From: Podarcis melisellensis
Taxonomy: Eukaryota
Assembly: GCA_964234715.1 (NCBI GenBank)
Contig: OZ174281.1
Length of the DNA: 64,000 bases
Reading direction: 5' to 3' (one strand)
Below are positions 16,111 through 43,300 of the stretch, piece after piece. The translations under genes were made by a program, and so were the position numbers. The first letter of the stretch is position 1, and each line of letters opens with the position of its first letter. The notes under the pieces are model-generated. The model was not told where the DNA came from. It did not search any database and worked only from the letters and a program-made list of their open reading frames with translations.

Positions 16111-16382
16111 NNNNNNNNNNNNNNNNNNNNNNNNNNNNNNNNNNNNNNNNNNNNNNNNNNNNNNNNNNNNNNNNNNNNNNNNNNNNNNNNNNNNNNNNNN
16201 NNNNNNNNNNNNNNNNNNNNNNNNNNNNNNNNNNNNNNNNNNNNNNNNNNNNNNNNNNNNNNNNNNNNNNNNNNNNNNNNNNNNNNNNNNNNNNNNNNNN
16301 NNNNNNNNNNNNNNNNNNNNNNNNNNNNNNNNNNNNNNNNNNNNNNNNNNNNNNNNNNNNNNNNNNNNNNNNNNNNNNNNNN
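16111..16382. other. Assembly gap (272 N)
   Basis: Run of N. Confidence 1.
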
Positions 16383-17136: not shown

Positions 17137-18126
<990 letters not shown>

Positions 18127-38499: not shown

Positions 38500-40320
38500 T
38501 TGCCAACCTCCCTTCGCGACAGGTTCAAGGCTGGTCCTCGAACTCCCAAAGTATCCCGCTGGGTTCTCATTCTCTGGTCGATCAGCCACCGAAGCCCAAG
38601 AGAATCTTCGCTTGCCCGCAACAGATGCAGACACGCGGGATCCTTTCTCGCGCGCTTGGAAGGAAAAGCCCCGCGCTGCACATCTCGCCCCGCCAGCGGC
38701 TGCCGGCGCCCCCTCCCGAGGCCTTTGCGGGGCTGCCGAGCCGCGGAAGAGGCGCCCGCCGCGGAGAGACGGCCAGGGCTGGCCCGCCCCCCGGGGGGCT
38801 CCCGCGCCGCCGGAGCAGCGACGTCCGCCGACCCCGGCGCGGCTCCGCCTGCCGGGCGGGCTTTTCTACCTGGCGGGGAGGTGGCCGTCGAGGGGGCGCC
38901 CGCGGAATCCCCGCGGAGGGAGGCGCGCGGGGGGGGGGCTGGTGGGGGCGGAGATGGGGTAGGCGCGCCCTCCGCCGCCCCGGTGCCCGGCTCTCGCTCC
39001 CCTGCCCCGCCGCCCTCCTCCTCCTCCTCCTCCGGCGCGGGAGCCCCGAGGGCAGGGGCGGGATCCGCGGCCCCTCCGCCGCTCCTGGCCGGTCCCCCCC
39101 CAGCTTACGCCGCTTCCGGTTCTGGCGCTGGAGCCGCGGCGGCGGCGGCGGCGGCGTCCCCCCATGGCCTGGCCAGATGCGGCAGGTCTGCTGCTGCTGC
39201 CTCGCGGTGCGGCGCCTGGGCGGCGACGGACGGCTCAGTGCGGCAGCAGCGGCGGCGGGCGCAGGAGCAGCTGGGCGCGGCGCGGCGGCGGCGGCGGCGG
39301 CGGAGGAGCGGCCTGGTGCGCGGGCGGCTCCGGGGCTGCCTCGGCATGCGGCGGGCTGCGACGGCGGCGCCCGGCTTGTGCGTGCTGCTCTTCGGCGTGT
39401 CGCTGGCCTGCTACTCGCCCAGCCTGCGCTCGGTGCAGGACCAGGCGTACTCGGCGGCCGTGGTGCTGGAGGGCAAGGTGCAGGCGCTGCCCGCCGCCGC
39501 CGCCCCGACGGGCAACGGGAGCCGGGCCGAGGAGGGCGCCGACGGCCCCCCGCCGCCCCCGCCGGGCATCCTGGTGAAGGTGCTGGACCTGTGGCCCCTC
39601 AACAGCGGCGGCCTGCAGCGCGAGCAGCTCATCCGCGTGGGCTCCGCGCCCGCGCCCTGCTCCAAAGTCAAGCGCAACCACCGCTACATCTTCTTCCTGG
39701 AGCCCACCGAGCAGCCGCTCGTCTTCAAGACCTCCTTCGCCCCGCTCGACACCAGCGGCAAGAACCTCAAGAAGGACGTGGGCCGCATCCTGTGCGCCGA
39801 CTGCGGTGAGCCTCGAGGGGGGCGTGTGGCCCAGGGAGGGGGCGGCAGGTGCCCGACGGCCCTGCGCAAGGCCGGCTATTCCGGCGGCGCTCCTCTGCAG
39901 TGCTGCATTGGCGAGCGGGGCGCAGCCGGGGAGGGCGCCCGGGCGCCTGTCGGGGCCTCGGCCTCCTGGACGGGCGCCCTGAACCCCGCAGCCGTCCTTG
40001 AGGGGGCGGGTCGGGTGGAGAAGGAGGCCGGGGGCGCTGCTGCCCGCCTTGCCCCGGGCGCCCCTCTTGGCGCAGGCTGCGCTCCGTTGTGTAAGGCATC
40101 GCCAGCAGCAACTTTCTTATGTAAACAACGCCCCCCCCTCTGCTCCCCCATCCCTGGGTGTTAAATGGCTCCATTTGTTGCTTTGAGCCGCTTCGCGTTT
40201 CTCCAGAGAAAACAGCTGGCCTGGGGCAGCCCGTGGCCGCGTCTTTTGCGGGGAAATCCTTTCTGCCGTCTTTCTTTCTGAGCGGAAAAGGGCGCTTCTT
40301 GGGGCGCGTGCTTCTGCTGC
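38500..40320. promoter_or_regulatory. NRG2 promoter CpG island
   Basis: Very high GC and CpG content with GCG repeats surrounding exon 1. Confidence 0.85.
39346..39805 (+). CDS. NRG2: Neuregulin 2, first coding exon (signal peptide + N-terminal domain; phase-1 donor G|GTGAG)
   Basis: MRRAATAAPGLCVLLFGVSLACYSPSLRSVQDQAY...VVLEGKVQ...LVKVLDLWPLNSGGLQREQLI...RNHRYIFFLEPTEQPLVFKTSFAPLDTSGKNLKKDVGRILCADC matches the NRG2 N-terminus. Donor GTGAG at 39806. Divergent arrangement relative to PURA matches mammalian synteny. Confidence 0.95.
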
Positions 40321-43300
40321 AGATGCTGGTTTGCCGCTCTGGAGTTTGTGTGGCCCCGGGTTTTGCAGATTTTATGGTGCATTTCACAGGAAAGTTTGGA
40401 TTTTGTCAGGAGCCACGTTTCTTTTGCTTGTGAGGCTGGCAGGGCAGATGCTGGCTCCTCTCACTGAAGAGCGAAGAGGTCTCTCTGCTGGGTGCAGGCG
40501 ATTAAGGGGATACAACTAAGGTGTTGTCGCACCCCACCCCCTTAGGGTCAAGGAAGCGCCTGAGTTAGGGCCACAACAGATGCTTAGATCTAGCCTGATG
40601 AGGTTTTTTTTAAGCAACCAGGCATTGTGGACTTCCAAATTTGGTTAGATAGAACATCAGCACCGGTGGAGTGAGGCTTTAACCCCTTTCACTCCTTGCT
40701 TTTCCTTCTCCAACTCTGAAATGATGTCCTCTGATGCAATGCATGCCTGTGGCAGACAGAAACATTTTCTAATGCAGATAATTTATAAACTGCAGAACAT
40801 TAGAACATTCTTCCCAAGTAAAAGCCCTCTGTGCTTCCCATAGCCTCCTTTTGAGCCTAATTATTTTTTTGTGCTTCCCTTTAGGGGTTTTTCTTTTTTT
40901 TAAGATAAAAAGTGTATATTTAAAATGATCATCTGGAAAATGAAGCAGTGGTTCATATTTGTATTTTTGGGTGGCCTGTTTTACTGTGTGGTTCCAGGAA
41001 TGATTGTGGTGTGAGCTGACTGGCCGTAGGTTGGCAGATTTTTCTGAACTATCTAACCCCAGAAGCTCAAGGCAGTTGAAATAACAGAAACTCCTAAGTA
41101 ATGGATTGTACAACTTGGTTGCACATGTGTTGACCTGGAAGCAAGGGACTGTAGCTTAAAAGGGAACTGACATATTCTAAAGCTGTAAGTCTATGCATGC
41201 TTAGTTGAGACGGTAAGCTCTACTGAACAAAGTGCGTCTTACTTCCACGTAAACATGTGTTGGCTAGTTTGGATTGGATGGCTGATTTAGCTTCATTCTC
41301 TTTTAATCTAAGGAAGCCATGATGAAATGAACAGGTTTTTAACCAAGTAATAGAGAATTTCTGGTTCTCCTCTTCAAACTTGTCCAGTTCAAGCCACAAT
41401 ATAGCTTTTGGTGGCTTAGGTGCCATTTATTTATATACAGTACAGTACTGTAAAAAAATGTAGATACCTCTTGATTTAGTAGAACCTCAAAGTGACTTTG
41501 ATAAAAGTGCTAATAGGGTTGTTTCCACTCAGCTTTAGGACTGTCTTTCCTGGGAAGAGGCCTTCCTGCACAGACATTCACTGTATATGTCAGGTGAAAA
41601 TGGCTTCATGCCGGCCAGTCCTGGGGTGCTCTCTGCCCCAGCTGCTCCCATTCACTTCTCTTTCTGCCTTGGGATTTTGGGAGGGGGACAAGGAAGTCTT
41701 GGGTTTTTGAGTTGGTTTTATTGATGTTTCATTGTGATCTTCTTATGCAAATACTTTGCTTAGAAAGTGTATAATAGTTTGAAGGGCACAATCAAATCAA
41801 AATTAATCAGTGTCAAACATTATTCCATTAAAGCAACGGGCTGGACTGTTTACGATTATTGCTGCTTCCTGATATTTAACTATGACTTTTCAGTACTTAT
41901 ATTGTTCAAAGTGATTAACACCCACAGTCTCCATAATTTCTCTCCCCTGAACATCTTTGCTATTATGAAATTTCAACATACACTCTCATGAATAATACAG
42001 AATTCCCCGGGGACAATCTTTATAACATAAAGAATGTATGAGCAAGCTGTTCTAATTGACAGCACATGGGCATTCATTGGGTTAATTGGATCATTTATTC
42101 ATTAAGAGCTTTGTAGCATGCCAGTCATACAGATGTATGTAATAAAAGTTCTCCTCACCCTTTTTTACCTATATACTTCCAGAGTTAGTACTTTGCCATA
42201 CAAGAGAACTGATAATAGCAATTAAGATGGTTCTTCACTTAATAATGATTTTTAAAAGTTCCTTTGGAGTTTCAGTTGCCAGCAAGGAATGAAGGTGAAT
42301 ATTAATACTCTGAAGCTGATGAATTGTCCATTAGAGACAGAAGTCATATATGTGAATGTTTCGGTTCCCAGATATAAGTTTTGGCTCTGGATATCTGATT
42401 GATTAATTTTGTTCTCTGTGATAGAGAAGGAATGTTGAAGACCAACATTTCCCATCGGGATCTGTGGCAAGCTTTTATAACTGGAAACGGTTGAACTACA
42501 GCAGGTACCCTGAGAATAAGTCATCACTCCTCTTTTTCCATGCTTCTGATTAGCTGAAAGTTTGGCATATCCATCCGCTTATTCACAAAAATGCAGCAGA
42601 TAAAATTAAGAAAGCCAGTGATAGATTAATGTAAGAGGACTAAAAATTGGGGGACACACCACCAACTAACACATTTTTTCCTCTTATATTAGGAAAGGGC
42701 TCATCCTATGCATTTTTAATCTGAGAAATCACAAGTTAATTCTGCGAAAACGGCTCAGTGTAAAAGGAAGTTTATATTTGCACTTTAACGGTTTGAAGGA
42801 ATGCCTTCTAGCTAAAACACTCTGTGGGGTTATCAGGAGCACTTTCTCAGCACAGCCATGGTGCAGATTGCAACATCCCCTCCCTTTTATCTCGCACTTC
42901 ATTATAAGGTGAATTGCTGTAACGGGCGTCTTCTCTACCCTTGAACCAGTGGAGTGATGTTCACAGATGCCTATAATTCTGTCCTGCTCAGGACTAGACC
43001 TCCTCAGAAGTCATGGGATGTAGGATTCATTGCTCATTTGAACATTGTTCTGGATCCCACAATCCTCTTGTGCCAGGACGAAGACATGTTCTCCTATTAT
43101 ATTAAATGATGCCATTATAAAATAATTGGTGCATTTGGATGTTTTGAATGCCCACAGCTTTGCTTATAGTGTTAACCTATTTACTGTGCTGTCAACGTTT
43201 ATGATCTCCTTTCTTGGCTGGGGCCTGAGGCTGCACAGGTAACACTCAATGTGGGGTGGGAGAGCAGGACCATGGCCAGCTCACTATGGAATGGGGTAGG

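Follow-up and report, generated by a model that had tools for sequence, protein, structure and literature searches.

Overlapping upstream open reading frames (ORFs) that lie out of frame with the main coding sequence are in many cases passed by leaky scanning, the textbook case being the second upstream ORF of ATF4. NRG2, an ErbB3/ErbB4 ligand of interneurons, presents a comparable arrangement in the lacertid lizard Podarcis melisellensis. Like the ATF4-type upstream ORFs, those in front of lizard NRG2 end past the main start, so that initiation upstream would exclude the main product, and the sequence context of the ATGs is weak upstream and better at the main ATG. Unlike ATF4, NRG2 features two upstream ATGs in two frames, 13 nt apart, and the arrangement is known here from sequence alone; a further difference is that another clade has one of the two upstream ATGs annotated as its main start. 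Human reference models start NRG2 at MRQVCC, and rat work counts from a Met further downstream. One rat study numbers the NRG2 ectodomain from aa 20, which can be read as residue 1 being the downstream Met and the signal peptide having 19 aa (PMC4451617). A search of the literature for NRG2 upstream ATGs or start choice found no report.

The window, by which the whole 64,000-nt stretch of DNA analysed is meant (assembly GCA_964234715.1, contig OZ174281.1), contains exon 1 as its only NRG2 content according to tblastn. Three ATGs are found on the + strand at 39164 (ATG1, frame 2), 39177 (ATG2, frame 0) and 39346 (the main ATG, frame 1), the last of which opens the protein MRRAATAAPGLCVLLFGVSLAC. 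They define the following features:

39164–39577, + strand: ORF of ATG1, frame 2, 137 codons, beginning MAWPDAAG, stop codon at 39575–39577
39177–39809, + strand: ORF of ATG2, frame 0, beginning MRQVCCCC with the human-type start codons, 210 codons within exon 1
39346–39806, + strand: NRG2 exon 1 coding part, frame 1, with start Met, signal peptide and NRG2_N; a split codon begins at its last base
39346–39411, + strand: signal-peptide-like N-terminus (MRR, hydrophobic core, SLAC), as read from the sequence
39807–39808, + strand: splice donor GT of exon 1, reading GTGAGC; NRG2 protein homology stops at 39804/39806

The initial annotation had placed three ATGs in three frames at these positions and had noted that the offset from 39177 to 39346 is not a multiple of 3; the coordinates were reproduced exactly, and the spacing was remeasured at 169 nt, or 1 mod 3. 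Its description of the MRQVCC frame as open through exon 1 holds as far as the donor, with a length of 210 codons in place of the 209 given. Both upstream ORFs (39164–39577 and 39177–39809) start before the main ATG at 39346 and end past it, that of ATG1 229 nt beyond and that of ATG2 at a TGA (39807–39809) overlapping the splice donor GT. ATG1 has C at -3 and G at +4, ATG2 has C at both positions, and the main ATG has G at -3. A Pfam search of the two upstream ORFs returned zero matches, and an exact look-up of four ORFs of the window in the protein collection returned zero identical entries.

Judged by homology, frame 1 is the sole NRG2 frame among the three. Pfam places NRG2_N (PF25518) on aa 33–136 of the ORF opened at 39346 (E=2.6e-30; 104.9 bits against a cut-off of 27), whose GC3 is 0.987, and tblastn with aa 1–153 of Podarcis muralis NRG2 maps to 39346–39804 at 98.7% identity. 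The predicted protein matches P0001 at 99%, and its best database match is the P. muralis pro-neuregulin-2, likewise at 99%, followed by other sauropsids at 75–84%. The P. muralis record (XP_028594096.2) starts at the same Met and shares 151 of 153 exon 1 residues; it differs at the other 2 and, as a database model, is silent on the upstream ATGs. The exon 1 part of P. raffonei NRG2 differs from the window at more residues than the 2 of P. muralis.

The start of this frame is likewise the one annotated in relatives. Among the relatives listed, the downstream Met (MRR[AD]P... or MRHDP...), and with it the signal-peptide-like N-terminus, forms the start of 39 of the 49 sauropsid NRG2 models, the other 10 being partial or odd bird read-throughs; a MRQV start occurs in 0 of the 49. 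Every squamate, turtle and crocodilian NRG2 model listed, and most of the bird models, use the downstream Met, which backs the earlier proposal that the functional start is the ATG in front of the signal peptide. Among the therian models or ORFs listed, 61 of 67 start at MRQVCC, which lies in frame and 80–97 codons upstream of the second Met in the six that were measured. The placental gene and the lizard gene share the cluster codons WPGQ-MRQVCC, the downstream Met, the signal-like segment and NRG2_N. They differ in that 80–97 in-frame codons link MRQVCC to the Met in placentals, whereas 169 nt separate the two out of frame in the lizard, and in a Ser-rich stretch of the placental protein that the lizard lacks. 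The lizard gene therefore falls outside the human-type extended NRG2, in which MRQVCC is in frame with the signal-peptide Met.

The two upstream ATGs form part of a short conserved cluster that was identified by comparing protein models and ORFs, and that lies within a GC-rich leader:

39159–39194, + strand: start cluster with ATG1 and ATG2, 13 nt apart
39001–39315, no strand assigned: GC-rich leader with triplet repeats and C runs

The cluster is met in three readings: as WPGQMRQVCC in lizard frame 0, the turtle model P0233 and the seal model P0081; as GLARCGRS in lizard frame 1 and the crocodilian sequences P0139 and P0009; and as MAWPDAAG in lizard frame 2 and in turtle and mammal models. 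The ATG1 peptide MAWPDAAG(L) forms the N-terminus of models from two turtles, rabbit, squirrel and a rodent, is internal to bat and tree-shrew models, and has a cobra variant, MARLDAAGL. Since MAWPDAAG is found in mammal models, mammals would have ATG1 as well, 13 nt before the annotated start and out of frame with it, and the pair of ATGs at this spacing appears to be conserved across amniotes, mammals included. In the platypus NRG2 model P0078 the first residues, MACPAAAAS, are similar to the ATG1 peptide and are followed in the same frame by an extension rich in Glu and Ser; cluster and gene may be joined here in yet a third manner. In teleosts, read-throughs in the NRG2 frame hold RWHGH[LF][RHC]KV..., which can be aligned with WPGQMRQVC and has no Met at the place of ATG2; its distance to the main Met is 42 codons in six records and 51 codons in three. 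There is no stop between the motif and the Met in the teleost records P0177, P0179, P0191, P0208–P0212 and P0214, the genomes of which are not GC-rich. The fixed distance suggests a strongly constrained, or even translated, leader in the fish NRG2 paralogues, and because the teleost motif is without a Met there, the cluster motif would be conserved for something other than, or besides, ATG2.

Several database models touching this region deserve separate mention. The Halichoerus grypus model P0081, named 'SKI family transcriptional corepressor 2-like', carries NRG2 exon 1 with an upstream read-through and is likely misnamed. The UniProt models P0224, P0225, P0220, P0227 and P0228 (two turtles, cobra, rabbit and squirrel) have ATG1 as their start and, compared with window positions 39164–39610, jump from ...GSV(R/Q)QQ.. 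to GGLQREQ in mid exon 1, skipping the signal peptide. The jump may reflect splicing within the exon or, alternatively, an artefact of modelling across a GC-rich gap; a donor matching it is absent from the lizard ATG1 frame.

Our preferred reading, which we hold to be probable, is that the downstream ATG is the start of NRG2 and that two weak-context upstream ATGs open overlapping ORFs that are passed by leaky scanning. NRG2 would be translated from 39346, putting a classical signal peptide at the N-terminus, since this is the only start that places the hydrophobic segment there. If the cluster is transcribed, both upstream ATGs would open ORFs overlapping the NRG2 start, and a ribosome starting at ATG1 or ATG2 would yield no NRG2 because of this overlap. 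As neither ATG has a purine at -3, most scanning ribosomes should leak past the pair, and those that do would use the better-context main ATG. The ATG2 ORF would leave exon 1 in a foreign frame and may terminate early in later exons. We infer all three elements of this scheme, namely the presence of the cluster in the mRNA, leaky scanning past it and a repressive or tuning effect on NRG2.

A comparison of ATG-to-ATG distances mod 3 across clades had been put forward as a check, and it was carried out with phases read from protein models and ORFs rather than from DNA alignments. In the Crocodylus porosus UniProt model P0139 and in a crocodilian ORF from a public run (P0009), the leader is read through in the NRG2 frame, with ATG2 175 and 172 nt, respectively, before the main ATG; the cluster reads ...NGLARCGRSAA... 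in both, compared with ...HGLARCGRSAA... in lizard frame 1. The RefSeq model P0233 of the turtle Mauremys mutica reads ...KWPGQMRQVCCSA... and then continues unbroken into an alternative exon 1 frame matching lizard frame 0 (218 aa aligned, 51% identical); H-E stands there at the position of the main ATG, which gives a distance of 145 nt from ATG2, and the model reaches 36 codons upstream of ATG2. The turtle model thus enters the same alternative frame of NRG2 exon 1 from MRQVCC, with the difference that it holds about 45 residues resembling the mammalian extension before the frames part just 5' of the main ATG, whereas the lizard leader after MRQVCC is without likeness to that extension. P0233 goes under the name 'cyclic GMP-AMP synthase-like isoform X2', likely a misannotation; the NRG2-like models of this turtle are found on its contig too.

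The distances of 169 nt in the lizard, 145 nt in M. mutica and 175 and 172 nt in the crocodilians are all 1 mod 3, so that the turtle and the two crocodilians match the lizard. The phase from the cluster to NRG2 is 0 in placentals and in teleosts (42 or 51 codons) and +1 in the lizard, turtle and crocodilians, and, judged from these models and ORFs, the shared reptile phase looks like a real feature and not an assembly error. That indels could alter the frame linkage, as had also been proposed, fits these two phases, the platypus start and a 4-nt difference within the lizard species itself.

This last difference emerged when the leader (39001–39315) was compared in other contigs of P. melisellensis by contig coordinates, that is, by letters spanned and not base by base. 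The X1 contig, from the same species and possibly the source sample, covers 39000–39316 in 316 letters, equal to the window, and the X4 contig, from another individual, sample and study, covers the same interval in 312 letters and is thus a net 4 nt shorter, a shortfall that is located only to within 39001–39315. The contig of organism H breaks at about 39305, and organism B contributed none. Both C runs and two of the four triplet repeats are located within the 176 nt that precede ATG2, which makes it plausible that X4 lost 1 plus 3 nt there; if the 4-nt loss falls between the ATGs, their distance becomes 165 nt and MRQVCC is in frame in that animal. At window positions 38837 and 38928, the X4 contig is longer than the window, by an 8-nt insertion (CGCGGCTC) and by one more G within a G run, and the CpG island upstream of the leader is indel-polymorphic between individuals. 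The window contains two N runs, at 16111–16382 (272 bases) and 17889–18020 (132 bases).

Composition limits what can be read from the frames themselves. The leader is 82% GC and the region of the MRQVCC frame 73–82% GC, and long ORFs are present in all six frames of the exon 1 region. When the codons of the coding part and the bases of the leader were permuted, the MRQVCC frame stayed open in 51% of shuffles (p about 0.5); its openness therefore carries no weight and was discarded as evidence. ATGs are neither enriched nor depleted in the leader, with 4 observed and 4.2 expected from composition. A special RNA structure between the ATGs was considered and rejected, as the 251-nt fold (-153 kcal/mol) is weaker than that of shuffles (z=+2.15), and an Rfam search of the stretch around the ATGs returned no family. 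The element beyond chance is, as far as the compared sequences indicate, conservation: the ATG pair recurs in amniotes, and its phase is common to three other reptiles.

The ATGs might instead be incidental to an element of another kind, since the region around exon 1 has features of a promoter:

38600–40400, no strand assigned: CpG island around exon 1, presumed promoter, with GC of 0.65–0.83 through 38600–40199 and 0.56 in 40200–40399
39113–39119, + strand: ETS-like CTTCCGG, 45 nt upstream of ATG1
39169–39171, + strand: candidate near-cognate CTG start, in frame with NRG2 and flanked by G at -3 and +4 (speculative)

CpG observed/expected in the island is 0.7–1.2. RFRF is the reading of the CTTCCGG bases in frame 0 of the lizard, in the NRG2 frame of crocodilians and in the teleost read-throughs; because the reading frames differ between lizard, crocodilians and fish, this conservation would be at the DNA level, and it hints at a promoter element near the transcription start. 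A search for the stretch in RNA runs gave zero hits, and the upstream ATGs may lie 5' of the transcription start, the ETS-like site and the cluster being 45 nt apart within the CpG island. The cluster would then be a promoter-proximal or leader element with another role, in which the ATGs are untranscribed or too rarely used to matter. The teleost motif without a Met at the place of ATG2 agrees with this, as do the DNA-level conservation of the adjoining CTTCCGG, the nature of the region as a CpG-island promoter, the number of leader ATGs that composition predicts and the weak context of both. Against it, the mammalian cluster lies inside the mRNA, as 61 models are annotated to start at MRQVCC, the turtle RefSeq model P0233 reaches back 36 codons 5' of ATG2, and both ATGs are retained across amniotes. 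On balance, incidental ATGs are unlikely, but they are the alternative to be taken most seriously.

A less probable possibility gives the cluster a larger role than leaky scanning does. If the phase is fixed by clade, translation from the cluster would matter in itself, and either the reptile MRQVCC ORF would specify a second exon 1 product, or the placental extension would be a fused upstream ORF, with the downstream Met the true start across vertebrates. We regard this as rather improbable.

It is more doubtful still that reptiles produce an extended pro-NRG2, whether initiated at the CTG at 39169 or, in those individuals where ATG2 may be in frame, at ATG2. Frame 1 has zero stops from 38500 to 39346, the CTG lies inside the conserved cluster in a favourable context (G at -3 and +4), and Arg/Ala-rich residues 5' of the Met resemble those of birds and mammals. 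The GC3-rich phase, moreover, follows frame 0 over 39130–39219 and then, starting at about 39220 and up to the main ATG, frame 1. However, open frames are expected at such GC and CGG/GCG repeats give a period of 3 without coding, the lizard residues just 5' of the Met differ from the AGG-Met junction of fish, birds and mammals, and the signal peptide would be buried in an extended protein. The ...GSVRQQ... segment of the lizard is displaced out of the ATG1 frame relative to the cobra, turtle and mammal models, and together with the switch in GC3 phase this agrees with a frame that was formerly continuous and was broken by an old frameshift, although triplet repeats also give such periodicity.

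Last, an assembly indel in the GC-rich leader, which the initial annotation had offered as its alternative and which would leave the true lizard MRQVCC in frame with NRG2 as in human, could be imagined from the triplet repeats and C runs at 82% GC, from a switch of the GC3-rich phase near 39220, where frame 1 takes over from frame 0 in the pattern expected of a recent frameshift, and from the 165-nt in-frame distance that the 4 nt missing from X4 would give if lost between the ATGs, but it is now very unlikely, the faintest of the readings considered here, because the phase of the window is shared with the turtle and two crocodilians (a wrong phase would agree one time in three, and four independent assemblies would need an identical error), the listed sauropsid models include no MRQV start, the X1 contig matches the leader span of the window, and the 4 nt of X4 may equally fall in the 176 nt upstream of ATG2.

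Leaky scanning past the two upstream ATGs thus remains the reading that we favour. Apart from the question of start choice, lizard NRG2 would be a commonplace example of a GC-rich leader with upstream ATGs, and overlapping upstream ORFs are already well known; the peculiarity of this locus is that one of the ATGs is the annotated main start of placentals. The comparison also flags two misnamed database models (P0233 and P0081). Three reptile lineages preserve the human-type start codon in their DNA, each time out of frame, and because MRQVCC is kept in this manner, the conserved thing would seem to be the start cluster and not the N-terminal extension. With this, the choice of AUG in NRG2, in mammals as well, becomes testable.
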